The position numbers and the translations under genes were made by a program. This document shows positions 797 to 64,000 of a stretch of 64,000 nucleotides of DNA, one piece after another. Each line of letters starts with the position of its first letter. Within the stretch, counting starts at the first letter, position 1. Source of the DNA: Malacoraja senta (lineage: Eukaryota); the NCBI GenBank assembly GCA_038087875.1, contig CM075979.1, positions 45,384,001 through 45,448,000 of the forward strand, given 5' to 3'. The notes under the pieces were generated by a model, which had not been told where the DNA came from, ran no database searches, and was given only the letters and a program-made list of their open reading frames with translations.

Positions 797-1054
797 CTGA
801 GGTAACTTTGAGTACTGTAGTACGCACTTCAGACCAAGTGGCGTCTGGAGTGTTTGATTTGTGTTCAATATTGATCTGAGCAGCATCGTCCGTGGATAAA
901 TTAGGCTGCACCTTAATACAGCAGTGAATGTGTGAAAGACCCATATGGGTAAGTTGTAATTCAGCCTGATCTGCAGAGAAGGATTTATCTTGATTGCATG
1001 AATTCAGTTTAGTTAGAGGTTGTGTCACCCTTTTTGGTCCCTGCAATTGTTCTA
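797..1054 (-). CDS. 5'-truncated third copy of the Ig-like tail exon (possible in-frame 258-bp exon)
   Basis: Matches 8063-8343 up to about position 1078, then diverges. Donor CAG/GTAAT intact at 797/796. Phase-1 acceptor TGTCAG/TA at 1055/1054 after a long pyrimidine tract. Confidence 0.45.
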
Positions 1055-4000
1055 CTGACAACTGCCAGTGAAATAATTTGCAGGTGGAAAAAAAGATTTT
1101 AAAGGGCAGAGCACACAAAGAGAAAGAACTGAATTTGAATATGTGGAGTTGCACACAGATAATGTGCCATCTTTGTGAATTTACCTGATAGTTTATAAAA
1201 TTCTAAGCGCCATAGATAGGGTAGACAGTCAGAACCTTTTTCCCAGGATACGAGATACAAATACTAGAGGGCACAGCTTTAAGATAAGAGGGGCAACGTT
1301 TAAAGGAGATATCCAGATGCACAAAATATTTTGCTCAGAGTAGGTGGAACGAGGACCAGGTTTAAGGTGAAGGGGAAAAGATTTAATTGGCATCTGAGGT
1401 GTAACTTTTTCACACAAAGAGAGGTAGGTGCATGGAACAAGCTGCCAGAGGAGGTAGTTCAGGCAGGGACTATCCCAACATTTATGAAATAGTTAGGCTG
1501 GTAAATGGATAGGACTTGTTTGGAGGATTATGGAACAAACGCGGGCAGCTGGAACAAGTGTAGCTGGGACATGTTGGCTGGTGTGGGCAGGTTGGGTAAT
1601 AGGGCCTGTTTTCCACACTGTATCTATGACTCTGTGACTATGACTATGTGCTGCGCAGATTTTATACACAGAGGGTGGTGGGTGACTGGGACTCGCTGCC
1701 AGGGGTGTTGGTGGAGGCAGATACGATAGTGACGTTTTAGAGTCTTTTGGATAGACACACGGATATGCTGGGAATTTAGGGATATGGGTTATGTGCAGGT
1801 AGATAAGTGATGGTCTTGGCATCATGTTCAGCACAGACATTGTGGGTTGAAGGGCCTGTTCCTGTGCTGTACTGTTCTATGTTCTATGTTGCAACAAAAG
1901 CATTACCTTCCTGTTTTACTGCACTTGGATTTTCCAGATCCCTAGCTTGATTTTCATCCTCATCGGGACTTCCTGTTGTGACATCTGAATCCGGCGCTGT
2001 ATTAAAATACAAGAAGGAGTCTCACATGTAATAATGCCAACACTGCCTGAGATAAGGTATCCCAACACATTCCGAGAAGCTGGATCACAGGACTCGAACT
2101 TTTGTAGTTTCCCACCAATATTTTAAGAGCACAAAAGAGAAGCCTTAACCTGACTAAAGATCTGCATGTTGCCGCTGCAAAAGTTACGTACAATTGTTAT
2201 TTAGATAAATACATCACTCTAAACATCAAATTTCCTCTGATCCCGTCCCTGCTGTAAGCCAAATGTTTAATAGACTTCAGAATGAACATTTCTGGGATAT
2301 TTACACTGGACAAAATGTCTCTCTGTCAACCCAGGGAATATAATTTGAAAAAATTCGGCAGGTGCACTTAGAGTCATAGAGTCATAGAGTGGTACAGCGT
2401 GGAAACAGGCCCTTCGGCCCAACTTGCCCATGTCGACCAACATGTCCCAGCTACGCTAGTCCCAGTTGCCCAGATTTGGTCCATATCTGTTTTGATATAT
2501 GTCTGCTTACAAAATAAGTAAACTAGCACATAATATACAGAGAAAGATGGCTGCACACGCACTCGTGTTGGGATCAAAAACAGGTATGATTTATTTCCAA
2601 GTCAAAGGTCACAGACTAATTTACTGAGCATGTGCGAGAATGAGTACAGCTCATACGCATAAATTACATGGATATTGTCACATCTTTTCCTTTTTGACAT
2701 TTTGGGATTACATTTCCAACGATCCAAAACAAAGCAAACAAACACTTTTCATAAAATTACACCGTAGTAATATGGTTTAACTTAACAAAATAAAACAACT
2801 GTTCTGTCTTATTTCACAATTTCAATCATAGTCACACTTGTGACATTTCAATAACATAAAATAATGTTCACATGCTTTCTTCTCATAAGCTTGTAGGTAC
2901 ATCGCAACAAAACACATGACTTCATGACATACTCGCCGTACCTCTCCGGCAGTCTGGACATCTCTTCCTGCCCATGTCTTTGTGATGGTGTTTTTTTCAA
3001 AAGTGTCTTCTTTTCAGTCTGTACATTCTGTGCATCACTTCTAGTTTCTTCTCTTGTGTCACTTTGTTTTCGTTTAGATTTCTCTGTGTTATGAGTTTCA
3101 CGATTTGCATCTTTTTCTGGTGATGCATGTTGTGTTGGTATTTTCTGTGTCAGCTGAGGTTGCAATGGTTTCACAGTCTTCTCTGTGTCTGGTGGTTTCT
3201 CTGGAGTTATGTGTGGGGGTAGTTCTCCGGTCTTCTTCAGATCCACTCGATTATGTCGGATTAGAAGTCCTGACTGTCTCGACTTCGTATGATCTCTCAT
3301 CCAGTCGTGTCTGAACTGTTGCTCTCTGCCATCTCCTAGTTTATAGGATCTGAATCTTACGACATCACCTTCTTCCAGGATTGGCAGATCCTTGGCATGT
3401 TGGTTGTCGATGTTTGACATGTTTGAGGAGGTTTGATGTAGGAAGAGTCGTTCTTGTTCTCCTTCCATGTAATCTAAGTTCAATACTACTGTTCACTCCT
3501 TGCGCAGGGGTGTTGCGTAATTCCAGTATTGCCAAGTAAACATCTGTCTTGGAGCGTGTGGTTTTCTTCAATACTCGCTTAGCTGCCTTGACTGCCAATT
3601 CCACCTTACCGTTAGCTTGGTTATGTAGTGGTCAAATTCCCATTTCCTGGCAAATTTGGCAAACTCCTCTGATGAGAACTGTATCCCGTTGTCACTTACC
3701 ACAGTGCTGGGAATTCCGTATCTTGCAAAGTGGTTCTTGAGTTTCACAATGATTGTCCTGCTGCTCAGGCCATACAGTCTGTCTATTTCCCAGAAGATAG
3801 ATGGTCAACTGTGACTAAATATTGTTTTCCGTCAAGTTCAAACATATCGGTTCCCACTTTCTCCCATGGTCGATCAGGGAGGTCATGGGGCATCAGAGTT
3901 TCTTTCTGATTCTGTTGTTCGTACGTCCTGCAGGCTTCACAGTTTGAAATGAACTGCTTCACATCAGAGTTCATTCCGGGCCAGAAAATGCATTCTACAG

Positions 4001-7000
4001 CACGACTGGGGGTTCCTGCCACTCCTAGGTGAGAGGTGTGGAGTGTCTCCTTCATATCTTTGCATAGAGTGACAGGGATTACAACTCTCCCTCCTCTGAA
4101 TAATAGGCCGTCTTGCACACTCAACTCGTCTCTGACATTGAAGTACGGTTGTGCTACCTCTGGGACTTCTGCCTTGTGATCTGGCCATCCATTTTGGATT
4201 ACTCTCTTAACTGTTTGTAGTGTTTTGTCTTCCCTGGTGTGGGCTTGGATGCGTTTGACCTTGTCATCTCCCATGCTCAAGGACTCAACTACGTTGACAT
4301 CAGTGAATCTGTTTGACCCTGTGGTGTCAGGGAGGTATGCTCGGGAGAGCATATCTGCTAGATGCATGTCTTTTCCCTTTACCCATTTGATCTCGATATC
4401 CTAGTGTAGCATCCTCATCATCATGCTCAAGACATCTTGGTGCTCTAGGCAGAGGCTTTTTGACAATGACTTCCAACGGCTTGTGGTCACTCTCCACGAT
4501 CACTCACTGTCCGTAGGTTTATTGATGAAAGCGCTCGAGGGCAAACACTATTGCTAGTGCCTCCTTCTCAATCTGAGCATATCTCTGCTCGGTTGGTGTC
4601 AATGCTCGACTCACATAGAACAGTGGTTGTCCTTTCTGCATAAGTGTTGCACCTAGACCTGCCTTGCTTGCATCACATTGTATGGTCAGCTGTTCGTCTG
4701 GTGTGTAGTACGCCAGGATAGGTGCCGTTGTCAACAGCTCCTTGATCTTTGACATTGCCATGTCATGTTCTGATGACCATTCCCACTCTGCTTCCTTGTG
4801 GGTCAATCTCATCAAAGGCTCGAATGTGTGCAACAACATTGGCAGGAATCTTGCCAAGTAGTTTACACTGCCTTGAATCGTTCCAACTTGTGTATTGTCG
4901 GCTCTTCGCCGATGACATGCATTCTTGCCGCTGTTACCTCCGAGGATCTACATATGCCACAGTCCCCTGCAGTGTCAGATTCCTCTTCTGAAGGAGTGTC
5001 TTCCTAGTTGACTGGTCCTCAATACCAATGACGATGCGATCTCGAATGAGGCTTTCTCTCAGGCAATCACAGAAGTTGCATGTTTTAGCAAACTCCTTCA
5101 GCTCTGCAACATACGATTCAACGCGTTCCCCTGGTTTCTGGTCTCGTTTATTGAGAATGAATCTTTCATATGTTTCATTCGTCTCTCCTATGATGATGAT
5201 GGACATCTTGTCGATGATGACTTTCACATCCGTCTCATCTGCTACCGTTTCGAATGTCAGGGTATTGAAGATTCGCACGCCTTCCGGTCCAACAGAATGC
5301 AGGAATACTGCTTTTTGATACGGTTTCTCTTTCTTATCCAGTTCTGTTATCACTGCATAATTTTTATACATATGTCTGCTTACAAAATAATTAAACTAGC
5401 ACATAATATACAGAGAAAGATGGCTGCACACACACTCGTGTTGGGATCAAAAACAGGTGTGATTTATTTCCAAGTCAAAGGTCACTGATTGACTTACTGA
5501 GCATGTGCAAGAATAAGTACAACTCTTACGCATAAATTACATGGATATTGTTACAATATCCCTCCAAACCTGTCCATGTACCTGTCAAACAGTTTCTTAA
5601 ATTTTTTGAAAGTCCCCGTCTTAACTACCTCCTCTGGCAGCTTGTTCCATACACCCACCACCCTCTGTGTAAAAAAGTTATCCCTCAGATCTTTTCCCTT
5701 TCACCTTAAACCTATGTCCTCTGGGTCTCGATTCACCTAATCTGGGCAAGAGACTCTGTGCATCTACCCGATCTATTCCTCTCATGATCCTATACACCTC
5801 TGTAAGATCACCCATCATCCTCCTGCACACCAAGGAATAGAGTCCCAGAGTACTCAACCTCTCCCTGTAGCTCACACCCTCTAGTGTTCCACACTATGAC
5901 TCTGTAACTATGACTATGTGGGGGGCAGGTTTTATACACAGAGGGTGGTGGGTGACTGGAACGTGCTGCCATGAGTGGTGGTGGAGGCAGATACGATAAT
6001 GGCATTCATGAGGCTTTAGGATAGATGCATGGATATGCTGGGAATAGAGGGATTATGGGTTATGTGTAGGTGGATAAGTGATGGTCTTGGCATCATGTTC
6101 AGGCCAGCATTATGGGCTGAAGGGCCTGTTCCTGTGCTGTACTTTTCTATGTTCTATATTTCAGCAAAAGCATTACGTTCCTGTTTTCCTGCACTTTGAT
6201 TTTCCAGATTCTCTTTTTCCATTTTACCCTCATCGGTACTTCCTGTTGCGACATCTGAATCTGCCGCTGTACAATACAATACAATACAATTCAATACGGT
6301 TTTATTCGTCACATTGCACATAAAGTGCAAGTGACATGAATTTGCCAGCAGCGGTACAATGATAAAGAACACACAATACACAATAAAAATTTAACACAAA
6401 CATCCACCACAGCATTCATCACTGTGGCGGAAGAAACAAAATTTGGCCAGTCCTCCTCCATTTCACCCCGTTGTCAGGACCTCAACCCTCCGCAGCCGTC
6501 GCTGCGGGCGCCAAATGTACAGACAGGTAAAAGTCCAGGCAAGTCCAGAGTCGGCTCTTCCCCACCGGAGACCGCAGCTTCAGGTTGCTGTAGGCCGCAG
6601 GCCGGCGGTCGAAGCTCCCCTCCTGGGGTGATGGTAAGTCCACGCCGGGCCCGCGTATTAAAACACAGCAAGGTGACAACAACTGAACTTGAATGCGTGT
6701 AGTCCCAAACAGAAAATTCCACATATTTGAGCATTGACCTGAATATTGTATATAATATTTGCAGGGATTAACTAAATATAAATCATGTACAATCTGCAGA
6801 CAATGGTTGGACATCAAATGCCACTGAAAGGCCAACAATACTCTGGATGCTTTGAGAAAAGCCTTACCTTCACTTGCTCCTGCATTTTGGGTATCCTGCC
6901 TCTCTATCTGTTGTTCACCTTCATCACAACTCCCCGTGGCAGCATCTGACTTGGACACTGCATTTAAACAAAAGAAAGTCTCTCAGATGTGATAATGGCA

Positions 7001-10000
7001 ACACAGCCTGAGACAAGGTATGTGAGAAGCTGGATCACACCGCGAGGAACTTTATTATTCTTCCCCACAGTGAAGTCTTCATCTGCCGAAGGATCTGTAT
7101 CTCATTCCTGCAGAAAATACCTTCAACTCTTCTTCATTATGAACCTCATTTGTCTTTAGACTTTAGAGACACAGCCCTGTGGCCCAACGAGTCCGCGCCG
7201 ACCAGTGATCACCCCGTACACTAACACTATCCTACACATTAATGACTATTTACAATTTTACCAAAAGCAAATTAGGAATGGCACAATGGAGCAGTGGATG
7301 AGTTGTTGCCTTACAGTCCCAGTGACCTGGGATCGATTCTGACTATGGACGCTGTCTGAATGGAGTTTGGACGTTCTCACCGTGACCGCGTGGGTTTTCT
7401 CCGGCTGCTCTGGTTTGGTCCCGCACTCCATAGACGTACAGGTTTGTTGGTTAATTGGCTTTGGTACAAATTGTCCCTGATGTGTGGGATAGTGCTATGT
7501 TTGGGGATCACTGGTCAGCACGGACTGGGGAAGCCTGGAATACAAGAGATATTGTGGTTCCGGCCGGAGAAAAGGAGGAATGGACCAGAAAGAAGAGCTG
7601 GGATCACGTGAATCCCTGGAGGAGCATCGGGATGTAGGAGTTACTTCGGAAGGAAATTGGAACGACAAAGAGAAGGCATGAGATCACTTTGGCTGAGAAG
7701 ATTAAGGAGAATGCAAAGAGTTTGTATAAGTATATGAAGGGGAATAGAGAATTGGATTAGTGTAGGATGCAGAATTGGCCTGAAGTTCATACGTTTTTGG
7801 AGCAGAATTAGGCCATTCAGCCCATCAGAAGCAGTGACAGTGAAAGATACAAGGAACTGTAGATGCTTGTTTACAAAAACATGGACACAAAGTGTTGGAG
7901 TAAGTGGGTCAAGTAGCATCTGTGGAAAACATGGATAGGTAATCTTTCGGGTTGGGATCTTTTTTGGACTAGAGACCCTGTCTAGTGGTGTGCCTCCCAT
8001 TGCTGTTTGTTATCTATATCAATGATTTAGGTGAGAATGTACAAGGCATTATTAGATATTACCTGAGGTAACTTTGAGGACTGTAGTACGCATTTCAGAC
8101 CAAGTGGCGTCTGGAGTGTTTGATTTGTGTTCAATATTGATCTGAGCAGCATCGTCCGTGGATAAATTAGGCTGCACCTTAATACAGCAGTGAATGTGTG
8201 AAAGACCCGGATGGGTAGTTTGTAATTCAGGCTGATCTGCAGAGAAGGATTTATCTTGATTGCATGAATTCAGTTTAGTTAGGGGTTGTGTCACCCTTTT
8301 TGGTCCCTGCAATTGTTCTGCTGACAACTGCCAGTGAAATAATGTAATTGTTTTCTGCTCTGTCCTCTTCAGTGATATAACAATATCCATTGGCACCAGA
8401 GTAGTCATGGTCACATCCCAGCTCACATCAGCAGTTTCACCATGTACAACTTCATACTGATTCTTCATATCACTAATTGCAGGAGCTGAAAGATAGACAC
8501 AAACAAAATTAAATGCAATGTAAAGGTAATGTTCCATTTTACTCCATTATTGTCCAACACATTATTCCTTGCATATAATTTACAAACTTCATTCATTTAA
8601 ACTTAGTTTAGTTTAGAGATACAGCACGGGAACAGTTCTTCGACCCACAGAGTCCATGTCCACCAGTAACCACTCCATACACTAGTCCTATCCTATACAC
8701 TGGGGGCATTTACAGAAGCCAGCACGTAACCCACTGAGTCCACAATGACCACCGATCACCCAGTAGTTTTGTGTTATCCCACTTTCTCATCGACTCCCTC
8801 CACACTAGGGGCAATTTCCAGAGGGCCAATTAACTGACAAACCCACACGTCTTAGGGATGTGTGAGGAAAACCATAGAAAACGATGTCAAGGTTTATGGG
8901 GAGGAAGCAAGTGATTGGGGTTGAGAGGGAAAGATAGATTAGCATGATTGAATGGCAGAGTAGACTTGAAGGGCCAAATGTGTAGTGTATGTAGGTAGAC
9001 AAATCTCCAGGGCCTGATCAGATATATCCGCGGACATTGTGGGAAACCAGAGAGGAAATTGTGGGAGCCCTGGTTGAAATTTACGAGTCTTCTTTAAATA
9101 CAGGAGAGGTGCCGGAAGACTGGAGGGTGCCTCTATTCAAGAAGGGCTGCAGGGAAAATGCTGGGATCTATAGGGCAGTGAGCTTAACATCTGTAGTTGG
9201 AAAGTTACTAGATAGTATTCTGAGGGATAGGATACACAGACATTTAGACGGACAAGGGCTGATTTGGGATAGTCAGCATGGTTTGTACGTGGGAGATTGT
9301 GTCTCAGAAATCTGATTGAGTTTTTTGAAGACGTGACCAAAAAGGTCGATGAGGGTAGAGCAGTAGATGTTTCATATATGAACTTCAGTGAAGCATTCGA
9401 CAAGGTTCCGCATAGTAGGCTGCTCTGGAAGGTTAGATCGCATGGGACCCAAGGAGAGATAGCTGAATGGATAGAAAATTGGCTTAATGGAAGGAAGCAT
9501 AGGGTGATGGTGGAAGGTTGCTTCTCAGATTGGAGGCCTGTGACTAGTGGTGTGCCTCAGGGTTCGGTGCTGGACCCGTTACTGTTTGTCATCTATGTTA
9601 ATGGTTTGGATAAGAACACACATGGCAAGATTAGCAAGTTTGATGATGATACAAAAGTGGGGGGTTTTGCAGATAGTGGATATGGTTGTGAAAAATTGCA
9701 GCAGGATCTTGATCAATTGTCCAGGTGAGCTGAGGAAGGGTTGATGGAATTTAATACAAAGAATTGTGAGAGTTACATTTTGTGAAGTCTAACGTTTGGG
9801 AGGATCTACACAGTGAATGGTAGGGCTCTAGGAAGTGTTGTAGAGCAGAGAGATCTAGGGGTGCAGGTGCATGGTTCCCTGAAGGTGGTCACAGGTAGAT
9901 AGGGTGGTCAAAATGGTGTTTGGCACATTGGCCTTCTTAAGACAGAGTATTGAGTATAGAATTTGGGAGGTCATGTTGCAGTTGTAGAAGATGTTGGTGA

Positions 10001-13000
10001 GGCCATATTTTGAGAAATGTGTTCAGTTCTGGGCACCATGTTATAGGAAATATGTTGTCAAGCTGGAAAGGGTACAGAGAAGATTTACAAGGATGTTGCC
10101 AGGGATAGATGGTCTGAGCTATAGGGGGAGGTTAAGTAGGCTGAGACTTTATTCCTTGGAGTGCAGGAGGATGAGGAGTGATCGTATTGAAGTGTACAAA
10201 ATCATGAGAGGAATAGATCTGTTGTAACTTTTTCACACAAAGGATTCTGGTTTATGGAACAAGCTGCCAGAGGAGGTAGTTGAGGCAGGGACTATCCCAA
10301 CATTTAAAAAACAGTTAGACAGGTACGAGGATAGGACAGGTATGGTGGGATATGGAACAAACGCGGGCAGGTGCGACTGGTGTAGCTGGGACATGTTCGC
10401 CCATGTGGACAAGTTGGGCCGAAGGTCCTGCTTCCACACTGTATCACTCTGTGACTCAATGACTCTGCAGTAAAATCACGTGGTTTACGTTCAGGTTTAT
10501 TAATGTCACATGTACTAAGATACAGTGAAAAGCTTTGTTTTGCAGGCAACCTACCAGGTCAGATGTACACAGACACAACATGCTGGAGACACAACATGCT
10601 GGAGCAACATGCTGGAGTACAAGGCATTATTAGATATTACCTGAGGCCACTTCCGGTTGCGACATGCTCTGCTAGCAGTCGCAAACTTTTTAGCTCCGCT
10701 GAAAAAATCGCGATTTTTCGCGTTAAAATCGGGTCTGGAGGTCGGGACCGTTTTTAAAAACTTACCGGAGCTTCATGTCGCGGTGCTGATGACGTCATCA
10801 GTAAGCGCCGCGATTTTAACGGAGGGAAAGTCATTTTAAATGAAAAGTACATCTCCAGGTCAGAGCCCACAGAGGAAAATCTCAAAACATCTGCTGAAGA
10901 CTCTGGAACAGCAAGAAACTTCAGAACTGACCTCTGGAGAGGTCTCTGGAATGGCTACTCGATCTGCAAAAGAGAAAACCGAAATGGAGGACTTAAGAAA
11001 CTCGGTAAGAGATATCAAAAATGATATGGAAGCTGGGAACAGTAAATTGATAGCCGGTAATGATAAAATACTTGAGGGTATTGAGGCTCTCCAAAAAAGA
11101 ATTGAAGGTGTGGAAAAAGGACTATCGATAAAAATTGAAAAGGTGGCAGAAGAGACCACAAAGATGTTTGAGGCTGTGCACGAAACTGTGGCTGCAAATG
11201 CATCTGCAGTGAATGATTTGGAAGCTGCTGTGGAAGTGATGGCTGGAGAGATGCAGACTATGAAGTCAGAAATAGATAGTCTCAAGAACCAAGTCACAAA
11301 GGTTTCGAATAAATGTGTTGACCTAGAAGCTCGCTCAAGACGTCAAAATATAAGAATACGGGGTGTAAAAGAGGGAGCCGAGGGGGACAATGTTTGTGAG
11401 TTCGCTGCCAACCTAATTAAACACGTACTGAAGCTACCAGAAGCACCTGTAATTGAAGTAGCACATCGACTCCCCAGATTTAAATCAAGATCTCAAGGAG
11501 AACGTGCCTACCCACGACAGATCATAATTAAACTTCGGGATATCTCAACAATGGAAGCGCTGATGAAAAAAATCAACCACGGAGAGAAGATGATGTACAG
11601 AGGTGATACTATTAAACTCCTACGGGACTACCCTTATGAGATTGAGCAAAAGAGAAGAAAGTTCTCACAGACCAGAGAAGTTCTTTATGGTGTTAAGGGA
11701 GTTTTGTGTGGAGTGTTTTATCCGGCTAGAATGCGTATCACCTTTGAGGGAGTGTCAAAAACATTCACTAATTCGGATGAATCTCTCAAATACGCTCAAG
11801 AAATCGCGACTAAGGCTGCATCAACTGGAGACTGAAAACCAAGACGACATGAACAAACGAACTTGCTTATTCTTCCAACAAGAATATCACAAGGAAAGTG
11901 AATTAACTGAACACTGATTTTTTATTTTTTATTTGACTTCAAGCAACAGATTCTTAGTGAGACGTGGCTAGACATTATTATCTTCGCTGGAACATTGTGC
12001 TATGTAATTCAAGGACACTACGTGCTCAAACGAGGAAAACCTGATAACGGGACGAACTGCTGGGCTGAGAGTGAAAAACATCACATGGCTTATATTGTTT
12101 ATAAAAAAATGAAAAAACTGAGAACTAATAATAATTAACAATTAACAATACTAATATAGAAATAGCAATTGAAATAGATAAAAAATGTGCAGTCTGCTCT
12201 GTTTAGCAGATAACAGCAAGTGCTATGCAGCTCGAGAGTGGAGGGAGGGGGAGACCGGGTACCTGGCATAACTCCAGGAGCCAGACTCCCGTTAACCCTT
12301 CCAGCGAACAGCTCATTTTTAACAATATTAAAATCAATTTAAAATAGTTAAGAGATAATATACACTCGAGGTTGATATGAAAAATATATACGGCTTATAT
12401 AGTTTTACAAAATGCTGAGAATTAATCATAATTAATAATTAACAATACTAATATAGAAATAATATTTGAAACTGATAAAACTGTGGTGCCTGCGTCATAA
12501 CGCAGACAGCAGTTATCACCTATGTTCGCAGCTCGTGGAGAGGAGAGGAGATCAGGCACCTGGCACAATTCCAGGAACCTGACTCCGGTTAATCCACTCA
12601 GTAAACCGCTCACTTTAACAATACTAAATTCATTTTAAAATAGTTAAGAGATAAAGAGTGAGTAGGATATGGAATCGAATACATTTGACATATATATAAA
12701 TTGTAACTGGGTGAAATAGAACTGAATTGGAAACGGTAATGACCCCATAGATTTTGGGTAATAAATACAGCGGGGCTAACTTTATACCAACTACGCCGGA
12801 AGCGTTATGGATGTCGTACCCCACAGACGAGTGGGCCACTCACTACGGTGTTGAAATTTTAGACACCGTAAATTTATTTGATTTATATATATTTTTTTTA
12901 ATCACAATATGTCACATCTGTGTGTTTTTTCTTCAAGGACAATCGCGCAGGAGAACTACCAAGGAAGTCTATAATAGAAATACTCCCAAAATAACCAGAG

Positions 13001-16000
13001 TCCGGAGGTATGAACGCACCACAATAATTAAGGTCATTAAAATTGGTAAAAATGCATGACGACAATCAAAAGAAAATAGGAGGAATCACATTATGTAGTT
13101 GGAATATAAGGGGGATTAATGAACCTATTAAAAGGGGCAAGATACTAGCTCAGTTGAAATCATACAACACGGACATAGCGTTTCTACAGGAAACACATCT
13201 TAAACAGCAAGATCAGACAAGACTGAGGGCGAACTGGATAGGCCAAACATTTCACTCTTCATTTACCTCCAAATCTAGAGGTACTGCAATTATTATTCGT
13301 AAAGGAATTCCATTTAAATCAAAGAACACTATTTTAGATAAGGAAGGGAGATATCTTATAGTAGCAGGGGAGATCAATAACATGCCAATTACGCTGGTAA
13401 ATATATATGCGCCCAACTTTGATAACCCTCAATTTTTTAATAAAATTCTGAATATAATTGCAGAATCTAATTATCAAAATGTTATAATCGGAGGAGATTT
13501 TAATTGTGTTTTAGATCCTTATTTAGATAAATCGATGCAAAAACAAAAAGGTCAGACGAAATCTAAAACCAGTGAACTCTTACACACATATATGGAAAAC
13601 ACAAATATAACAGATGTATGGAGGATTGCAAACCCGACGGGAAGGGATTACTCGTTTTATTCAATGGTGCATAAAACATATTCACGGATAGACTATTTTC
13701 TAGTGGATACAAAATTAATTTCGCAATCTCTGAATCCTAAATATCATATTAATGCGATCTCAGATCATTCTCCGTTAACTTTTGTTCTAAAACTAGAAGG
13801 AATGTCTATGAATAAACCGTTCTGGAGGTTTAACTCACAAATTTTAAAAGACCCTCAAGGGAGTATCTATCTAAAAAAACAGATGGATCTATTTTTTGAG
13901 TTAAATGATACACCAGAGATATCCCCCACGTTATTATGGGAATCCTTCAAAGCATTTATAAGAGGAGTCATTATTTCATTTCAAGCCTATCAAAATAAAA
14001 AGAATAAGAATGAACAAAGACACTTAGAAGATCAAATAAAACAGTTAGATATAGATAATGCTAAAGACCCAACTATGGATAAACATAATAAAATACTACT
14101 ACTGAAATTTCAGTTAAATAAATTACTGTCAGAGAAAGTTATAACATTATTTCAAATCACAAAACAAGAACACTTCGAATTCGGGGACAAACCCCACAAA
14201 CTTCTAGCACGACAACTTAAAAAACGGGAAAAAGAGAATGCAATATTAAAGATTAAATCAGATAGAGGGGAAGTATTAACACTACCCAAGGATATTAATA
14301 AAAGATTTGCTCAATTTTACCAGAATCTATACACATCTAAAACGTCAATAGACAATAATAAAATCTCAGAATTTTTAGATAATTGTAATCTACCACAATT
14401 AGAACGCAGGGAACAAGAGGAACTGGGAGCACAAATTACTTCTAAGGAGATAGAAGACACAATAAAAACACTAAAAAATGGAAAAACACCAGGACCAGAC
14501 GGATTCAGTAATGAATTTTATAAATCTTTTTATGATATAGTTACTCCACGATTACAAAAAATGTATATATATGCTTATAAAGAGCAAAACCTACCTGAAA
14601 CACTAGCGGAATCAACGATCATATTAATACTTAAAAAAGATAAAAATATAGAAGAACCAGGATCATATAGAGCTATTGCTTTGTTAAATACGGATCAGAA
14701 AATAATAGCAAAAACATTAGCCAATAGATTAAGCAAGTATGTTAGTAGACTAATACATGAGGATCAAACAGGATTTATACCTAAGAGACACTCATTTAAT
14801 AATTTGAGACGTTTGCTTAACATAATGCATTCACATAAATCTTATGACGAAGAGTTAGCTATCATCTCACTGGACGCAGAAAAAGCGTTTGATCAAGTAG
14901 AATGGGACTATATGATCAAAGTATTGCAAAAATTCCAATTGGGAGAAAACTTTATTGCATGGATAAAACTACTATATAACAAACCTACGGCTAGAATACT
15001 AACTAATAATATATTATCTTCAAAATTCGAATTATCTAGGGGCAACAGACAAGGATGTTCACTATCACCGCTGTTATTTGCTTTGGTAATTGAACCCCTT
15101 GCTGAAAAAATAAGAACACACTCGAATATTCACGGTTATAACACAAAATATTCAAACAACAAACTATCCCTATATGCTGATGATGTACTACTGTACATCA
15201 CAAAACCACAAATTAGTATACCAAATATATTAAACTTAATTGAGGACTTTGGATCCTTTTCAGGATATAGAATAAATTGGAACAAAAGTGAAATTATGTC
15301 GATTAAACCAAAAGACTCAACACATCTCAGGAAATTCCCTTTTAAAATAGCTATGGAAAAATTCAAATATTTAGGAATTGAGATTACTAGAAATTACCAT
15401 GATATGTTTAAAGCTAATTATAATCCCCTACTTAAGAAATTAAATAATCTGATTAAATTTTGGAAAACACTTCCGATGTCCTTAATAGGTAGGATAAATG
15501 CTATAAAAATGATTTTCTTACCACAAATCCTTTACCTATTTCAATCAATACCTATATATCTCCCAAAAAAGTTTTTCAAAAAACTGGACTCAGACATTAC
15601 AAATTTTATATGGGATTACAAATCCCACAGAATACAAAGAACACACCTTAACAAACGAAAAGAGTTGGGGGGTCTAGCGCTCCCTAACTTTATGTATTAT
15701 AACTGGGCAGTAAATATTAAAAATATGATTCACCTGCTGGACAATTCTGCCCAGCAGGTGGACTGGATTATAATGGAAAAAGGGGATTGCTCCCCGAATA
15801 ATATAGGAGCGATTATTCTCTCTCCAATAAATTTGAATAATAAAAATTATAATAAAAATCCAATTATATATAGCACTATTAGAACATGGAAGCAAATAAA
15901 ACAGAATCTAAAATTAAGAAACCTATCTCTCTTAATACCAATAGTCAATAACCCATCGTTTAAACCTTCAATCATAGATAAAGCATTTATACAATGGGAA

Positions 16001-19000
16001 AGAATGGGAATTAAAACGCTCGAAGATCTGTATGAATTAGAAAAATTACTATCATTCCAACAACTACAACTGAAATATAATTTGAAAAATAATCAATATT
16101 TTAAATATATACAAATCTGTGACTATTTGAAAACACACACAAAAGATTATTATAATATGCCTTCCGACTTACTAGATGAAGCAATGAAGACAAAGGCGGA
16201 ATCAGTTAATTTAATATCATACTTATATAATATCATCTTAAATATAGAAATACCCACAACAGATGGAATTAGAAGAGATTGGGAACAAGATCTAGGTATA
16301 AAAATTTCAAAAGAGAGTTGGGATAATCATTTATTACAGGTGCATAAATGCTCGATCAACGTACGACATACGCTTATCCAATTTAAAACATTACATAGAT
16401 TATATTATTCAAAAACCAAACTAAATAAAATCTTTCCTAACGTCTCATCAATCTGTGATAAATGTATATGTCAAGAAGCTACCATAGCACATTCTTTTGT
16501 TTTTTGTACAAAAATCCAAAAATTCTGGTTTGAAATATTTGATATTTTTTCAAAATTAATCAAAATAAAACTGGTACCAAAACCAGAATGGATTATTTTT
16601 GGAATATCGGAAGGTATTCCTGAATTAAACGTGTATCAGAAGAATTTACTCAATTATGGGCTAATAATGGGAAAAAAGCTTATACTTAAATTCTGGAAAA
16701 CTGCGCCCACACCAACAATAAAAATGTGGACATCAAATATGTTGGAAACATTACATCTGGAAGAGATGAGATTCCTCCTAGTAGGTAAAGTAGATCAATT
16801 TCAAAAGACGTGGTCTACGTTTTTGGACCTATTACAAGCATGAGGTGCAATAGTAATTTAGAAAAACAAATAAATAAATAAAAGGTATCTGGACCTGGTA
16901 ATGGGAGGTAAAATAAAAACAGACTTGGTTGGTAGTTCCTTCTCTATGAAGTATGGTATAAGAGTTATAATAGAGCGATTGTTCCTTCTTTCTTTCTCTT
17001 TTTTTTTCTAGGGTCTATTTTCTAACTTTACTTCCTTCTCTAACCTCTTCTCTAAGGGGCTTTCTTTTCCCAACACTCTTTTGCACTTCACAACCTTTGC
17101 GCACTTTCTTCACTTTTCTTACTTCTTTCTTTTTCTTTCTTAAAGTTTAAAAAAATGAAGCGGTACAAAAAATGTATTAATATATACGTGTTGTACATTA
17201 CTGTAATCTACCGTACTTCTAAAAAATAAAAAAAAAAATAAAAAAAAAAAAAAAGATATTACCTGAGGTAACTTTGAGGACTGTAGTACGCATTTCAGAC
17301 CAAGTGGCGTCTGGAGTGTTTGATTTGTGTTCAATATTGATCTGAGCAGCATCGTCCGTGGATAAATTAGGCTGCACCTTAATACAGCAGTGAATGTGTG
17401 AAAGACCCGGATGGGTAGTTTGTAATTCAGGCTGATCTGCAGAGAAGGATTTATCTTGATTGCATGAATTCAGTTTAGTTAGGGGTTGTGTCACCCTTTT
17501 TGGTCCCTGCAATTGTTCTGCTGACAACTGCCAGTGAAATAATGTAATTGTTTTCTGCTCTGTCCTCTTCAGTGATATAACAATATCCATTGGCACCAGA
17601 GTAGTCATGGTCACATCCCAGCTCACATCAGCAGTTTCACCATGTACAACTTCATACTGATTCTTCATATCACTAATTGCAGGAGCTGAAAGATAGACAC
17701 AAACAAAATTAAATGCAATGTAAAGGTAATGTTCCATTTTACTCCATTATTGTCCAACACATTATTCCTTGCATATAATTTACAAACTTCATTCATTTAA
17801 ACTTAGTTTAGTTTAGAGATACAGCACGGGAACAGTTCTTCGACCCACAGAGTCCATGTCCACCAGTAACCACTCCATACACTAGTCCTATCCTAAACAC
17901 TGGGGGCATTTACAGAAGCCAGCACGTAACCCACTGAGTCCACAATGACCACCGATCACCCAGTAGTTTTGTGTTATCCCACTTTCTCATCGACTCCCTC
18001 CACACTAGGGGCAATTTCCAGAGGGCCAATTAACTGACAAACCCACACGTCTTAGGGATGTGTGAGGAAAACCATAGAAAACGATGTCAAGGTTTATGGG
18101 GAGGAAGCAAGTGATTGGGGTTGAGAGGGAAAGATAGATTAGCATGATTGAATGGCAGAGTAGACTTGAAGGGCCAAATGTGTAGTGTATGTAGGTAGAC
18201 AAATCTCCAGGGCCTGATCAGATATATCCGCGGACATTGTGGGAAACCAGAGAGGAAATTGTGGGAGCCCTGGTTGAAATTTACGAGTCTTCTTTAAATA
18301 CAGGAGAGGTGCCGGAAGACTGGAGGGTGCCTCTATTCAAGAAGGGCTGCAGGGAAAATGCTGGGATCTATAGGGCAGTGAGCTTAACATCTGTAGTTGG
18401 AAAGTTACTAGATAGTATTCTGAGGGATAGGATACACAGACATTTAGACGGACAAGGGCTGATTTGGGATAGTCAGCATGGTTTGTACGTGGGAGATTGT
18501 GTCTCAGAAATCTGATTGAGTTTTTTGAAGACGTGACCAAAAAGGTCGATGAGGGTAGAGCAGTAGATGTTTCATATATGAACTTCAGTGAAGCATTCGA
18601 CAAGGTTCCGCATAGTAGGCTGCTCTGGAAGGTTAGATCGCATGGGACCCAAGGAGAGATAGCTGAATGGATAGAAAATTGGCTTAATGGAAGGAAGCAT
18701 AGGGTGATGGTGGAAGGTTGCTTCTCAGATTGGAGGCCTGTGACTAGTGGTGTGCCTCAGGGTTCGGTGCTGGACCCGTTACTGTTTGTCATCTATGTTA
18801 ATGGTTTGGATAAGAACACACATGGCAAGATTAGCAAGTTTGATGATGATACAAAAGTGGGGGGTTTTGCAGATAGTGGATATGGTTGTGAAAAATTGCA
18901 GCAGGATCTTGATCAATTGTCCAGGTGAGCTGAGGAAGGGTTGATGGAATTTAATACAAAGAATTGTGAGAGTTACATTTTGTGAAGTCTAACGTTTGGG

Positions 19001-22000
19001 AGGATCTACACAGTGAATGGTAGGGCTCTAGGAAGTGTTGTAGAGCAGAGAGATCTAGGGGTGCAGGTGCATGGTTCCCTGAAGGTGGTCACAGGTAGAT
19101 AGGGTGGTCAAAATGGTGTTTGGCACATTGGCCTTCTTAAGACAGAGTATTGAGTATAGAATTTGGGAGGTCATGTTGCAGTTGTAGAAGATGTTGGTGA
19201 GGCCATATTTTGAGAAATGTGTTCAGTTCTGGGCACCATGTTATAGGAAATATGTTGTCAAGCTGGAAAGGGTACAGAGAAGATTTACAAGGATGTTGCC
19301 AGGGATAGATGGTCTGAGCTATAGGGGGAGGTTAAGTAGGCTGAGACTTTATTCCTTGGAGTGCAGGAGGATGAGGAGTGATCGTATTGAAGTGTACAAA
19401 ATCATGAGAGGAATAGATCTGTTGTAACTTTTTCACACAAAGGATTCTGGTTTATGGAACAAGCTGCCAGAGGAGGTAGTTGAGGCAGGGACTATCCCAA
19501 CATTTAAAAAACAGTTAGACAGGTACGAGGATAGGACAGGTATGGTGGGATATGGAACAAACGCGGGCAGGTGCGACTGGTGTAGCTGGGACATGTTCGC
19601 CCATGTGGACAAGTTGGGCCGAAGGTCCTGCTTCCACACTGTATCACTCTGTGACTCAATGACTCTGCAGTAAAATCACGTGGTTTACGTTCAGGTTTAT
19701 TAATGTCACATGTACTAAGATACAGTGAAAAGCTTTGTTTTGCAGGCAACCTACCAGGTCAGATGTACACAGACACAACATGCTGGAGTAACTCAATGGG
19801 TCAGGAGGCATCTCTGGATAGAAGGAATGGGTGATGTTTCGGGTGAGACACAGATCAGATGTACCAGGCATAAATGTGTGGGGATCCAAACAATAAATTT
19901 GGCATATTTGCTAATTTTCCTGATAGAAGTATATAAAATTAATCATGGATAGACTATCAGCAGCTTTTTCCCAGGATGGAAAAATCATATACTAGAGGGC
20001 ACAGCTTTAAGATGAGAAGGGCAAATGTTGAAGATGTGTGGGGTAGGTTTTATATACAGTGGATGGTGGGTGACTAGAATGCACGGCCAGGGGTGATGGT
20101 GGAGGCTGATACGACAGTAACGTTTAAGAGACTTTTGTATAGACACATGGATTCCCACCTGCTGAGGTTCCCACCTGCTTTAAAAGGGCATCACTTATAC
20201 TGGTGCCCAAGAAGAGCAAGGTGACGTGCCTCAACGACTATCGACCAGTGGCACTAATGTCTGTGGTGATGAAGTGCTTTGAGAGGTTGATCATGGCGCA
20301 AATCAACTCCTACATCGACAAAAACCAGGACCCACTGCAGTTCGCTTACCGCCACAACAGATCAAAGGTGGATTTTATCTTGCTGGCTCTCCACTCTGAT
20401 CTGGACCACTTGGACAACAAAAACTCATATGTCAGGCTGTTATTAATTGATTACAGCTCGGCATTTAATACAATCATCCCCTCCAAACTGGTTACCAAGC
20501 TCTCAGATCTGGGTCTCTGCGCATCCCTCTGCAATTGGATCCTCGACTTCCTCATTCAAAGATCACAGACTGTTCATATTGGTGGAAATGTGTCAGCCTC
20601 GATAACAATCAGCACGGGAGCACCTCAAGGCTGTGTGCTCAGTCCCTTGCTGTACTCACTCTATACTCATGACTGCGTAGCCGGTCATAGTGCGAACTCC
20701 ATCATCAAGTTCGCTGACGACACCACTGTTGTGGGACGTATCACTGATGGGGATGAGTCAGAGTATAGAAGTGAGATCGACCTACTGACCAAATGGTGCC
20801 AGCACATTAACCTGGCCCTCAACACCAGCAAAACCAAGGAACTGATGTGGACTTTGGAAGGGGTAGGATGGGGACCCACAGTCCCGTTTATATCAACGGG
20901 TCGATGGTAGAGAGGATCATGAGCTTCAAATTCCTGGACGTGCATATTTCTGAAGATCCCTCCTGGTCCGAGAACACTGATGCAATTATAAAGAAAGCAC
21001 ATCAGCACCTCTACTTCCTGAAAAGATTACGGAGAGTCGGTATGTCAAGGAGGACTCTCTCTAACGTCTACAGGTGCACAGTAGAGAGCATGCTGACCGG
21101 TTGCATCGTGGCTTGGTTCGGCAACTTGAGCGCCCAGGAGTGGAAAAGACTACAAAAAGTAGTAAACACTGCCCAGTCCATCATTGGCTCTGACCTCCCT
21201 ACCATCGAGGGGATCTACCGCAGTCGCTGCCTCAAAAAGGCTGGCAGTATCATCAAGGACCCACACCATCCTGGCCACACACTCATCTCCCTACTACCTT
21301 CAGGTAGAAGGTACAGGAGCCTGAAGACTGCAACGTCCAGGTTCAGGAATAGCTACTTCCCCACAGTCATCAGGCTATTAAACTCAACTGGAACAAATCT
21401 CTTAACATTAATAGACCATTATCTGTTTATTTGCACTTTATCTGCTTATTTATTGATGTGTGTATATATTTATATGATGGTATATGGACTCACTGATATG
21501 TTCTGTATTCATGCCTACTGTATTCTGTTGTGCTGAAGCAAAGCAAGAATTTCATTGTCCTATCTGGGACACATGACAATAAACTCTCTTGACTTGACTC
21601 TTGGATATGCTGGGAATTGAGGGATATGGGTTATGTGCAGTTAGCTAATTGATGTTCTTGGCATCATGTTCAGCACAGACATTGTGGGCTGAAGGGCCTG
21701 TTCCTGTGCTGTACAGTTCTATGATCCATGTTTCATAGTTGGCATATCACTTGGATCAAGTGATCGTCCTCTGTTTTTCGTGCGGATAGAACGGAAGAGT
21801 CCGGAAAATCCAAGGGTGGAGGGATTTGCTTCATGACCAACAACAACTGGTGCAACCATAAGGGTATTAAGATGCTTTCCCGTTCCTGCTTGTCGGACCT
21901 GGAGCATCTGACGATCTCATGCCGTCCATTCTACCTTCCCCGGGAGTTCAGCTGAGTCATCATAACAGCCGTCTACAAACCACCACATGCAGACACTGAC

Positions 22001-28000: not shown

Positions 28001-31000
28001 CCCCTACCACCCCAGCAACGGACTGTTCCAGCAGCTGCGGTCAGGCACGCGCCTCCGCTGTCACACTGCGAAAACAGAGAGGATGAGACAGAGTTTCTTC
28101 CCACAGGCCATTAGGTCTGTAAACTCTGGTCTCACCAGGGCGTAAATCCTGTTGCATCTACTTTTTTTAATGTAAATACTGGTTCTGTTCTGTTCTTTTC
28201 TGTTGTTTTGCACAATCCCACAAGCATTGCCACTCTCATTTCACTGGACATCTTGTATGTGTATGTGACAAATAAAGTTGACTTGATGTTTCAGTAAAAG
28301 CATTACCTTCCCATTTTCCTGCGCATTGATTTTCCAGATTCATTGCTCGCCTTTCACCCTCATCGGGGCTAATGTAGCTGGGACATGTTGGCCAGTGTGG
28401 GCAAGGTGGGCCGAAGGGCCTGTTTCCAAGTTGTATCACTGTATGACTCTTTGATTATGAATGGCCAAGTTTTGTACCTATTACCTATGAATTTATGAAC
28501 ATGGAGAAAACCCACACAGTGGTGACATCTGAATCCGACATGTAATGATGCCAACACTGCCTGAGATAAGGTATCCCAACACATTAGGAGAAGCTTGATC
28601 ACAGATCTGTGGAATTCTCTGCCTCAGAGGGCAGTGGAGGCTGGTTCTCTGGATGCTTTCAAGAGAGACCTAGATAGGGCTCTTAAAAATAGCGGAGTCA
28701 GGGGATATGGGGAGAAGGCAGGAACGAGGTACTGATTGGGGATGATCAGCCATGATCACATTGAAAGGCAGTGCTGGCTCGAAGGGCCGAATGGCCTACT
28801 CCTGCACCTATTGTCTATTGTCTCGATCTTTGTAGTTTCCCACCAACATTTTAAAAGCACAAAAGAGAAGCCTTAACCTGACCAAAGATCTGCATGTTGC
28901 TGCTGTAAAAGTTACATACAACTGTTATTTAGTTAAATACATCGCTCTGGTTTTGTACGTGGGAGATTGTGTCTCACTCTGATTATGTCTTTTGAAGACG
29001 TGACCAAAAAGGTCGATGAGGGCAGAGCTGCAGTTGTTGTATATGTGGACTTCAGCAAAGCATTGAACAAGGTACCACATGGTAGGCTGCTCTGGAAGGT
29101 TCGATCGTATGGGATCCAAGGAGAGATAGCTGTAAATTGGCTTCAAGGAATGAAGCAGAAGTTGATGGTGGAAGATTGTTCCTCAGACTGGAGGCCTGTG
29201 GCTACTGGTGTGCCTCAGGGTTCAGTGCTGGGCCTGTTACTGTTTCTCTTGGTTCCTTGAAGGTGGAGTCGCAGGTAGAAAGTTTGGTCAAAAAGGCATT
29301 TGACAGATTGGCCTTCATCAGTCAGAGTATTGTGTATAGAAGTTGGGAGGTCATGTTGCAGTTATATAAGACGTTGGTGAGGCTGCATTTAGAGTATTGT
29401 GTTCAGTTGTTGTCAAGCTGGCGAGGGTACAGAGAAGATTTACGAGGATGATGCTGGGACTATCCTAATGTTTAAGAAACAGTTAGACAGATACATGGAT
29501 TGGACAGATTTGGAGGAATATGGGTGGGACTAATGTAGCTGGGACATGTTGGCTGGTGTGGGCAAGGTGGGCCGAAGGGCCTGTTTCTAAGTTGTATCAC
29601 TGTATGACTCTTTTCTTATGAATGGCCAAGTTCTGCACCTATAACCTATGAACTTATGAACATGGAGAAACATAGAAACATAGAAAATAGGTGCAGGAGT
29701 AGGCCATTCGGCCCTTCGAGCCTGCACCGCCATTCAATATGGTCATTGCTGATCATCCGACTCAGTATCCTGTACCTGCCTTCTCTCCATACCCCCTGAT
29801 CCCTTTAGCCACAAGGGCCACATCTAAATCCCTCTTAAATATAGCCAATGAACTGGCCTCAACTACCTTCTGTGGCAGAGAATTCCACAGATTCACCACT
29901 CTCTGCGTGAAAAATGATTTTCTCATCTCGGTCCTAAAAGACTTCCCCCTTATCCTTAAACTGTGACCCCTTGTTCTGGACTTCCCCAACATCGGGAACA
30001 ATCTTCCTGCATCTAGACCGTCCAAACCCTTAAGAATTTTGTAAGTTTCTATAAGATCCCGCATCAATCTTCTAAATTCTAGCGAGTACAAGCCGAGTCT
30101 ATCCAGTCTTTCTTCATATGAAAGTCCTGCCATCCCAGGAATCAGTTTGGTGAACCTTCTCAGTACTCCCTCTATGGCAAGAATGTCTTTCCTCAGATTA
30201 GGAGACCAAAACTATACGCTATACTCCAGGTGTGGTCTCACAAAGACCCTGTACAACTGCCGTAGAACCTCCCTGCTCCTATACTCAAATCCTTTTGCTA
30301 TGAATGCTAACATACCATTCGCTTTCTTCACTGCCTGCATGCCTATTTTCAATGACTGGTGTACCATGACACCCAGGTCTCTTTGCATCTCCCCTTTTCC
30401 TAATCGGCCACCATTCAGATAATAGTCTACTTTCCTATTTTTGCCACCAAAGTGGATAACCTCACATTTATCCACATTATACGGCATCTGCCATGCATTT
30501 GCCCACTCACCCAACCTATCTAAGACACCTTGCAGCCTCCTAGCATCCTCCTCACAGCTAACACTGCCGCCCAGCATCGTGTCATCCGCAAACTTGGAGA
30601 TGTTGCATTCAATTCCCTCATCCAGATCATTAATATATATATTGTAAATAGCTGGGGTCCCAGCACTGAGCCTTGAGGTACCCCACTAGTCACTGCCTGC
30701 CATTCTGAAAATGACCCGTTTACTCCTACTCTTTGCTTCCTGTCTGCCAGCCAGTTCCCTATCCACATCAATACTGAACCCCCAATACCGTGTGCTTTAA
30801 GTTTGCATACTAATCTCTTATGTGGGACCTTGTCGAAAGCCTTCTGAAAGTCCAGATATAACACATCCACTGGTTCTCCCTTTTCCACTCTACTAATTAC
30901 ATCCTCGAAAAATTCTATAAGATAGAATAGAATAGAATAGAATAGAAACTTTATTTGCCACACGACCAGGGTTGGTGGTAATTGGGTTCGGTACATGATG

Positions 31001-59325: not shown

Positions 59326-60297
59326 TTATATATTTGCAGATTCTAAAATTCTTTCTGCAAATAACACAGGTTCTGCTAGCGGCTTGTTGTAGAACGTTTG
59401 GAACGTTTTCTCCATGGACCACCCCACTGTAGCCAGGATGTGGTTCAGTGGTACGTCCATCCTTTTAGCCGCCGATGTGGATGCTGCCCTAGTGGAGTGA
59501 GATGTATATACGTCAGTATCTACTCCAGCAACTCCCAGTACCTGCTTTAGCCACCTTGAGATGGTTTGGCTCGATACCCGACCATGTGGTTGCTTGTGGC
59601 TGACCCATAAGGCTTTTTCTCTCCCTCGGGAATCTCTTGTTGTGTTGATGTAAGTCAGTAGGTGAGTCATGACACACAACCGCGGGTCAGGTGGGTATGC
59701 CCGGAAATCCATAACTAGGCCTGAAGTTCCTGACCTGCTCTGCTTTACCAGCTCCTGAATGGTGAATGAGACCCGGTCTGGTGTTATAACCATGTTGTCC
59801 AGTCGCAGTAAGTAGAGGGACTGGACTCTTTGTGATGAGACTAGTGCCATCAGCATGACCGTTTTCAGGGTTAGCTGTTCCAGAGTGAGAGACCTGGCTG
59901 GTGACCATCCTCTTAGGTATGTCAGGACCACACTGACATCCCAGATTCTGGTGTATCTAGGTCTAGGGGGGTTAGAATTGAATATACCCCTCATGAGTTT
60001 AATCACCAGCGGGTGAGACCCTATAGCCTGTTGTTCTGGTACTTGTTTTAAATAGGCTGACAGAGCACTTCTGGCAGTATTGATGGCGCTGTAGCTCAAT
60101 CCTTCATTATGGTGAAGGCCAGCCAGGAACTCCAGTACATTGGTTATGGTTGCAGATGAGTACGTTGTCCCAGTAGTCGAGCAGTATCTTTCCCACTTCC
60201 TGATGCTCGATAGGTATTGTTTCCTGGTGGACATACGGTGGGACGCTGTCATCGTGTTGATGGTTCTGTCAGACAACCCCAGCAGTGGTCTTTTCAT
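59326..60297 (-). CDS. DIRS tyrosine recombinase (ATG at 60297), open
   Basis: QRVQSL (Arg), SHSTRAAS (H-x-x-R), GW and FQTFYNK (catalytic Tyr). Confidence 0.92.
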   Translation of the reverse strand: MKRPLLGLSDRTINTMTASHRMSTRKQYLSSIRKWERYCSTTGTTYSSATITNVLEFLAGLHHNEGLSYSAINTARSALSAYLKQVPEQQAIGSHPLVIKLMRGIFNSNPPRPRYTRIWDVSVVLTYLRGWSPARSLTLEQLTLKTVMLMALVSSQRVQSLYLLRLDNMVITPDRVSFTIQELVKQSRSGTSGLVMDFRAYPPDPRLCVMTHLLTYINTTRDSRGREKALWVSHKQPHGRVSSQTISRWLKQVLGVAGVDTDVYTSHSTRAASTSAAKRMDVPLNHILATVGWSMEKTFQTFYNKPLAEPVLFAERILESANI

Positions 60298-63486: not shown

Positions 63487-64000
63487 TTTCCCAGTTTTAT
63501 CTGGAATTACAGAGCAGAGCAAGCTTGCTATTATGACCTCAGAGTAAGTACTTACCTGATGGGCCGCTTTTTAAACTTGTAGCGGGAGCGCCTTGTACTC
63601 CCGTTCGTCGCTGTTGCACTGCGTGAACGCTCATGTCGTGCATGCGTGCTGGACGGGCTCTTCACGTAGTCACTCACGTGACTCCGAAGTAAAATCTGCA
63701 ATTTGAGAAGGAGAACGTTAAATCGGAAGTGGCAGTGATGCAGTTGAACAAAGGGGACTATGAAGGCATGAGAGGGGAGCTGGCCAAAGTAGACTGGAAA
63801 GGGATCCTAGCAGGAATGACGGTGGAACAGCAATGGCGGGAATTTCTGGGCATAATCCGGGAGACGCAGGATCATAGATACATAGATACATAGATACATA
63901 GAAAATAGGTGCAGGAGTAGGCCATTCGGCCCTTCGAGCCTGCACCGCCATTCAATATGATCATGGCTGATCATCCAACTCAGTATCCCGTACCTGCCTT

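Follow-up and report, generated by a model that had tools for sequence, protein, structure and literature searches.

Can a receptor of the B7 type carry immunoglobulin (Ig)-like domains on the inner side of the membrane? To our knowledge, the Ig domains of Ig-superfamily receptors are nearly always extracellular. The question is raised by a stretch of 64,000 nt from the skate Malacoraja senta (contig CM075979.1, positions 45,384,001-45,448,000), which is called the window in the following and in which all coordinates are counted. A sequence-only reading had found exons of 423 bp downstream of the transmembrane (TM) exon of a gene resembling B7-H6 (NCR3LG1) and had interpreted their products as a cytoplasmic array of cysteine-less Ig-like domains. 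According to the analysis presented here, Ig-fold modules derived from a C1 domain are encoded 3′ of the TM exon and form, together with acidic linkers, a modular cytosolic tail of the B7-H6-like gene, a reading to which we assign a probability of roughly three in four.

Ig-Like Domain Exons in a Gene With V, C1, and TM Exons

Using the model XP_078271721 of Rhinoraja longicauda as tblastn query, the order leader, V-set, C1-set, and TM exon, a 78-bp tail exon, domain exons, and linker exons was found on the minus strand (Table 1). The window is collinear with this model from the leader through the linkers, with 80% identity in the domain. After the leader, every spliced exon has phase 1-1. Ten exons of the window, all with AG/GT splice sites, can be joined conceptually into an open frame of 667 residues, which runs off the start of the window.

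The 423-bp phase 1-1 exons were found downstream of the TM exon and the short tail exon with AG acceptors and GT donors, as the sequence-only reading had stated. Both are preceded by a pyrimidine tract and AG and followed by GTAATA, and their products of about 140 residues are identical. They are named the 8k and the 17k copy here, after their positions. The assignment of these exons to the V-C1-TM gene, which had also been claimed before, is supported because of the collinearity with the Rhinoraja model, the canonical splice sites and the open conceptual frame; the same order is present in complete models of other cartilaginous fishes.

The proposed B7-H6-like identity agrees with a comparison of the ectodomain of the Rhinoraja ortholog to the PDB, in which NCR3LG1 chains (6yjp, 4zso, and 3pv6 being the best) matched with E-values of 4.9e-24 to 7.5e-23, followed by CD276 (1.7e-15). 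This supports a sequence likeness to human B7-H6 over other B7 members. Common to both are a signal peptide, a V-set domain, a C1-type domain, a single TM segment and a long tail.

A C1-Derived Domain Without the Canonical Disulfide

The domain was aligned in 26 instances, and this alignment was compared with an alignment of the C1 domains of the same genes. Five positions (V24, I34, R40, F49, and W51) are invariant, Trp22 is present in 23 and Cys99 in 25 of the 26 instances. Comparison of the two profiles by hhalign gave a match of 93.9% (E 1.6e-7) over 96 columns, comprising strands A to F. It pairs L.C.V.GFYP..I.ISW of the C1 domains with L.W.V.GF.P..I.IV. of the tail domain, DGTFSVSS with DGTF.V.C, and Y.C.V.H with L.V.V.H. 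The alignment of the product with the gene's own C1 domain, as drawn in the sequence-only reading, was thereby recovered on the family level including the motifs named there, whereas no significant match resulted when the product was compared by pairwise BLASTP with the C1 and V domains of the gene itself.

The replacement of both disulfide cysteines and of the core tryptophan was confirmed in the 26 instances. The B-strand site is occupied by Trp (23/26) or Cys (3/26), the C-strand site by Leu, Val, Ile, or Phe, and the F-strand site by Val, Ile, or Leu, so that the canonical B-F disulfide and the C-strand Trp, which are typical of but not obligatory for an Ig fold, are absent. In addition, strands C and E are separated by about 35 inserted residues, among which an LFHW motif is invariant. 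The comparison shows a domain that, judged by its sequence, is derived from the C1-set domain of the B7-H6-like gene and has lost the B-F disulfide.

The term cysteine-less was wrong, since the product contains cysteines at positions 74, 99, and 100, the second of which is the near-invariant one. A conserved pair of cysteines is absent in the family. From the alternation of strand E (Val97, Cys99, Ile101) we infer that Cys99 faces the core. The motif YEVV, which had been put forward as a signalling motif, is present in each full copy as described; it is restricted to the two skate sequences and lies within the first β-strands, and the family has no conserved Tyr position. It was rejected as a signalling motif.

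The family is without an entry in Pfam. A weak match to the C1-set family (PF07654) was the most frequent one, obtained for 7 of the 26 instances with a best E-value of 1.2e-4. The domain of the window itself matched no Pfam family even at E-values up to 10, and the C1-set gathering score was not reached. In comparison with PF07654, the motifs of strands B, C, E, and F align, but the Cys pair and the Trp are missing and the long insert carrying LFHW is added between strands C and E. The PDB sequence search with the window product was blank, the family profile gave chance-level matches to the PDB (E about 0.5), and a word-index protein search returned nothing with the window product and, with the Rhinoraja domain, no protein other than the query.

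Predicted Fold

With the 26-member alignment as input, AlphaFold 2 (AF2) predicted an Ig sandwich with a mean predicted local distance difference test (pLDDT) score of 88.6 and a predicted template modelling (pTM) score of 0.83. Structure prediction had been suggested as a check of the Ig fold, and the result is in favor of it. Foldseek connected the model to V-type Ig domains with a probability of 1.0 (E 5.5e-5), and all of its matches in AFDB Swiss-Prot are Ig V-type domains. Structural alignment against V-type Ig domains (VIA-align) gave Z-scores of 11-12 over 110-117 residues at a root mean square deviation of about 2.7 Å. As far as the predicted model goes, the domain is thus shown to be an Ig-fold sandwich.

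The best structural matches are V-type, in comparison to the seven-strand topology of C1 domains without C′ and C″, because the C-to-E insert adds strands to the predicted model. Features from the ESM Atlas also pointed to V-set Ig domains; they served only as a lead. Prediction from the single sequence of the window product was poor (pLDDT 48), and the matches of that model to viral jelly-roll capsids in Foldseek were discarded as meaningless.

Relatives in Cartilaginous Fishes

A phmmer search of the domain product against 1.84 billion representative proteins yielded 13 proteins at E<1e-10, all of which originate from cartilaginous fishes. With cluster look-ups, the relatives span 11 species, namely Heterodontus francisci, Scyliorhinus torazame, S. 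canicula, Stegostoma tigrinum, Heptranchias perlo, Rhinoraja longicauda, Leucoraja erinacea, Mobula birostris, M. hypostoma, Hemitrygon akajei, and Callorhinchus milii. Almost all of these proteins are labelled "uncharacterized protein". One cluster partner from Callorhinchus has been named "natural cytotoxicity triggering receptor 3 ligand 1-like" by NCBI.

In all models with a complete N-terminus, a V-set and a C1-set domain (Pfam) come first, followed by one hydrophobic segment and then by 1 to 8 copies of the domain. A single copy is found in the models of rays, two to three in those of Rhinoraja, Stegostoma, and Scyliorhinus, seven in Heterodontus and eight at one Callorhinchus locus.

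The Rhinoraja locus has the same exon order, and its two full domain exons are separated by 6 kb. In the coordinates of that locus, these exons lie at 35443-35850 and 41407-41850; they are 99% identical with a synonymous divergence (dS) of 0.012. Of the first domain exon, the NCBI model retains no more than the terminal 31 codons by use of an internal acceptor, which could be an error of prediction or a genuine alternative site. In Leucoraja erinacea, the N-terminal 31 residues of a predicted isoform match the domain end at 94% and are followed by linkers of the same type.

In Callorhinchus, at least four such loci are situated on one 15.6-Mb scaffold and therefore constitute a lineage-specific multigene family. 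In the domain tree, Callorhinchus stands apart from the elasmobranchs, and the batoids are grouped together. The repeats of Heterodontus and Stegostoma cluster by species, and the first-position domains of two Callorhinchus paralogs form a pair. These groupings argue that the domain is older than the split of chimaeras and elasmobranchs and was later duplicated or homogenised within lineages; the layout would then predate the separation of the chimaeras from sharks and rays.

Topology of the Tail

The gene has the features of a type I single-pass protein, with leader and TM exons in the window and a single hydrophobic segment after the leader in the complete orthologous models. They begin with a signal-like segment and contain a single TM segment, which is followed by a flank rich in Lys and Arg; the cytosol is therefore the expected location of the tail in the main isoform. 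The ectodomains contain 34 N-glycosylation sequons where 15.8 are expected from composition, a 2.2-fold enrichment, whereas the tails, with 30 sequons observed and 31.5 expected, show none; this is consistent with a cytosolic tail. The linkers are strongly acidic, and, with a single exception among the models, the tail has a net charge between -13 and -64.

Several points weigh against a cytosolic array of this kind. The gene models of the other species are automatic predictions. In isoform X3 of Heterodontus francisci (XP_067902349), the TM exon is skipped and the end of C1 is joined to the tail, so that a secreted protein is predicted. No splice joints of the domain exons were seen in reads aligned to the locus, and no spliced transcript was found there. 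The ratio of nonsynonymous to synonymous divergence (dN/dS) relative to Rhinoraja is 0.56-0.62 for the domain exon (dS 0.18), in comparison to 0.28 for the V exon and 0.79 for the C1 exon, and a value near 0.6 indicates only weak short-term constraint. Weak short-term constraint is usual for fast-evolving immune genes. With regard to novelty, full-text literature searches yielded no account of Ig-like modules in the tail of B7-H6, and an earlier mention in work on shark B7H6 is possible.

Very probably, the tail domains do not act outside the cell. For this to happen, the symmetric 102-bp TM exon would have to be skipped, which would yield a secreted V-C1-(domain-linker)n protein with Ig domains lacking the canonical disulfide. 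The Heterodontus isoform X3 is of this form, disulfide-free extracellular Ig domains are known, e.g., the first domain of CD2, and several cysteines are present in the domain. However, the TM segment is retained by four of the five isoforms in Heterodontus and by every other complete model. The sequon enrichment of the ectodomains does not extend to the tails, and their strongly acidic linkers and net charge also argue against secretion. Moreover, the cysteines include no conserved pair, and the one that is nearly invariant probably points into the core.

Copies in the Window and Transcript Evidence

Both full domain exons lie inside a duplicated segment of 2535 bp, the two copies of which differ at a single position (Table 1). 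In two sequencing runs, X3 and X4, the depth is even through introns and exons, i.e., DNA-like, and in the read contigs the depth over the domain exon is not doubled. In run X4, both letters of the differing position, T and A, were seen at similar depth. The 2.5-kb duplicate may be a real recent duplication or an artefact of the assembly.

An older duplication connects positions 1-1077 with 7271-8343 at 95.45% identity and includes the truncated domain copy at 798-1077. No upstream AG acceptor in the required phase was found for this copy by sequence reading. What looks like an array in the window amounts to a single exon, a recent twin of it (99.96% identical) and a fragment that is probably dead. 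The repeated array proposed in the sequence-only reading is not supported for the window. A further relic is probably the linker fragment at 28305-28370, which stands alone downstream of the first tail exon and upstream of the domain exons. Unrelated sequence has taken the place of its 5′ part, the upstream flank does not resemble those of the remaining linker exons, and sequence reading places the closest AG in the wrong frame.

The full exons could likewise be relics or belong to another transcript, with a tail that ends earlier and copies decaying amid retroelements. The truncation of the 798-1077 copy and its missing in-frame acceptor fit this, as do the L1 poly-A tract located 8 nt past the 17k donor site, the retroelement-rich distance of 21 kb between the TM exon and the first domain exon, and the lack of splice joints in the reads. 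We consider it improbable, as both full copies have retained an open frame and canonical splice sites, the 8k copy retains its ancestral intron, and the downstream linker exons follow the order of Rhinoraja. The Leucoraja isoform, which joins the domain end to linkers of the same type, also speaks against decay. In the runs X1 and X2, which are possibly RNA and come from another organism, two small contigs were found inside the exon (8106-8240 and 8295-8412), and no contigs in the two bins that are free of repeat-level depth, 6742-7055 and 7527-7683, the former of which holds the linker exon at 6.9k. The DNA-like contig of run X4 is uninterrupted over 7995-8628.

Finally, an open frame that arose by chance or from a transposon and is unrelated to Ig domains, as the blank Pfam, PDB, BLASTP, and word-index searches and the single-sequence AF2 model of the window product might suggest, is refuted by the family conserved in 11 species, the profile match to C1 and the confident AF2 model with structural matches to Ig domains at Z of about 12.

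Comparison With Known Systems and Possible Role

The C1-derived modular tail probably arose by duplication of the C1 exon of a B7-H6-like gene to the 3′ side of the TM exon. The domain exons and the exons for 30-residue acidic linkers would then build a long tail, and the domain would fold in the cytosol without the canonical disulfide by use of Trp in place of the B-strand Cys and of aliphatic residues in place of the C-strand Trp and the F-strand Cys. Duplication of symmetric exons would shift the copy number, from one to eight across the models. In the window, this process would have left one functional exon, a very recent duplicate associated with an L1 element, and an older truncated relic.

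Human B7-H6 is a ligand of NKp30. Its tail contains short motifs of the immunoreceptor tyrosine-based inhibitory motif (ITIM), SH2-binding, and SH3-binding type and a Gag-like segment. The skate-type tail differs from it in consisting of folded Ig-like modules and acidic repeats of 30 residues, and Pfam scans of full-length relatives detected no Gag family.

Butyrophilins (BTN/BTNL) are relatives of B7 with a V-C ectodomain and an intracellular B30.2 (PRY/SPRY) domain. The B30.2 domain of BTN3A1 senses a cytosolic ligand and alters what the ectodomain shows to lymphocytes. The likeness is one of architecture only, i.e., a B7-type ectodomain, one TM segment, and a folded β-sandwich on what is probably the cytosolic side. 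In contrast to butyrophilins, the domain described here is a C1-derived Ig domain and not B30.2, and it occurs in 1 to 8 repeats with acidic linkers. No PRY/SPRY family was found in Pfam scans of ten full-length relatives.

Titin, filamin, myosin-binding protein C, and comparable proteins contain Ig sandwiches that fold without a disulfide in the reducing cytosol and form tandem scaffold arrays. Disulfide-free Ig sandwiches, tandem arrangement and a putative cytosolic location are shared with the tail described here. However, the domains of these proteins are of the I-set or filamin type and are part of soluble cytoskeletal proteins, whereas the skate domain is related to C1, belongs to a type I membrane protein and, in comparison to titin-type Ig domains, has the insert of about 35 residues with V-like extra strands.

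Among possible functions, a multivalent cytosolic scaffold for protein binding or a sensor, which couples the cell interior to the display or clustering of an NKp30-type ligand in analogy to the B30.2 domain of butyrophilins, would be the most likely one; this role is speculative and deserves little confidence. Equally tentative, and rather unlikely in our view, is the idea that cartilaginous fishes independently evolved an "inside-out" receptor similar to the butyrophilins, in which the tail as a multivalent sensor or scaffold with a rapidly evolving copy number would control the display or clustering of an NKp30 ligand in stressed or infected cells.

The module is probably old and undescribed, and would sit inside the cell on a known type of receptor. 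Through duplication of a symmetric exon, a C1-type domain apparently reached the cytosolic face of the receptor to which it belongs and was re-packed without the disulfide. If the topology is true, the tail provides a clear natural example of an immune domain from outside the cell that has adapted to reducing conditions in the cytosol, and a domain family is defined that Pfam does not yet hold. It would also suggest that the oldest jawed vertebrates couple a natural killer (NK) cell ligand to intracellular events by a folded tail, comparable to the butyrophilins. For annotation, the family provides a name for "uncharacterized" proteins in at least 11 species.

Retroelements and Other Features of the Window

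The features of the gene, the duplicated segment and the open reading frames (ORFs) of two retroelements are listed in Table 1.

Table 1. Coordinates of exons, domain copies, duplicated segment, and retroelements in the window.
Feature	Position	Strand	Remarks
Leader exon	53128-53179	-	ATG at 53179, ends in phase 1, GT donor; 89% identity to residues 1-18 of the Rhinoraja model (tblastn)
V-set exon, 339 bp, phase 1-1	48125-48463	-	Pfam V-set E 9.7e-11; 79% identity to the Rhinoraja model; AG/GT
C1-set exon, 315 bp, phase 1-1	40201-40515	-	Pfam C1-set E 1.6e-13; 77% identity to the Rhinoraja model; AG/GT
TM exon, 102 bp, phase 1-1, followed by Lys-rich stop-transfer flank	38704-38805	-	Matches the Rhinoraja TM segment; hydrophobic segments in orthologs
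First tail exon, 78 bp, phase 1-1	33984-34061	-	70% identity to residues 266-292 of the Rhinoraja model; AG/GT
Fragment of 30-residue acidic linker unit, probably relic	28305-28370	-	tblastn match to Rhinoraja linkers
Tail Ig-like domain exon (17k copy), 423 bp, phase 1-1	17263-17685	-	In near-identical duplication; L1 poly-A 8 nt past the donor
Tail Ig-like domain exon (8k copy), 423 bp, phase 1-1	8063-8485	-	Same sequence as the 17k copy; ancestral downstream intron
Acidic linker exon, 90 bp, VSKSD type, phase 1-1	6868-6957	-	Matches the Rhinoraja linker following each domain; AG/GT
Acidic linker exon, 90 bp, AADSD type, phase 1-1	6177-6266	-	Match to Rhinoraja linkers; AG/GT
Acidic linker exon, 90 bp, APDSD type, phase 1-1	1907-1996	-	Match to Rhinoraja linkers; AG/GT
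5′-truncated domain-exon copy, probably dead	798-1077	-	Residues about 48-140; in 95.45% identical duplication
Duplicated segment, 2535 bp	8054-10588, repeated at 17254-19788		One mismatch (8696 T, 17896 A); 99.96% identical
L1-type LINE	10840-17253	+	Between the two domain copies; ORF1-like frame 10840-11835, ORF2 13043-16843, poly-A to about 17253
DIRS-like tyrosine recombinase ORF	59326-60306	-	
DIRS-like reverse transcriptase ORF	60429-62063	-	
DIRS-like further upstream ORF	62401-63522	-	

The L1-type long interspersed nuclear element (LINE) has an open ORF1-like frame of 331 residues without a Pfam match and an intact ORF2 of 1266 residues with endonuclease and reverse transcriptase domains. 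Its poly-A ends at the edge of the 2.5-kb duplication. From these sequence features, the element looks young and is possibly still active.

Remnants of the pol region of a long terminal repeat (LTR) retroelement with RNase H and an integrase zinc-binding domain are located at 2848-5371 on the minus strand, with the 1.9k and the 6.2k linker exon on either side. In addition, a DIRS-like retroelement was identified at 59326-63522 on the minus strand, and all of its ORFs are open.

Two observations concern introns of the B7-H6-like gene. The intron downstream of the TM exon contains a run of 152 N at 37498-37649, which is an assembly gap or a masked stretch. Finally, a tandem repeat with a period of 66 bp was detected at 47379-47639 on the minus strand in the intron that directly follows the V exon, where a 22-residue unit is repeated in an ORF; self-comparison by k-mers showed offsets of 66 and 132.

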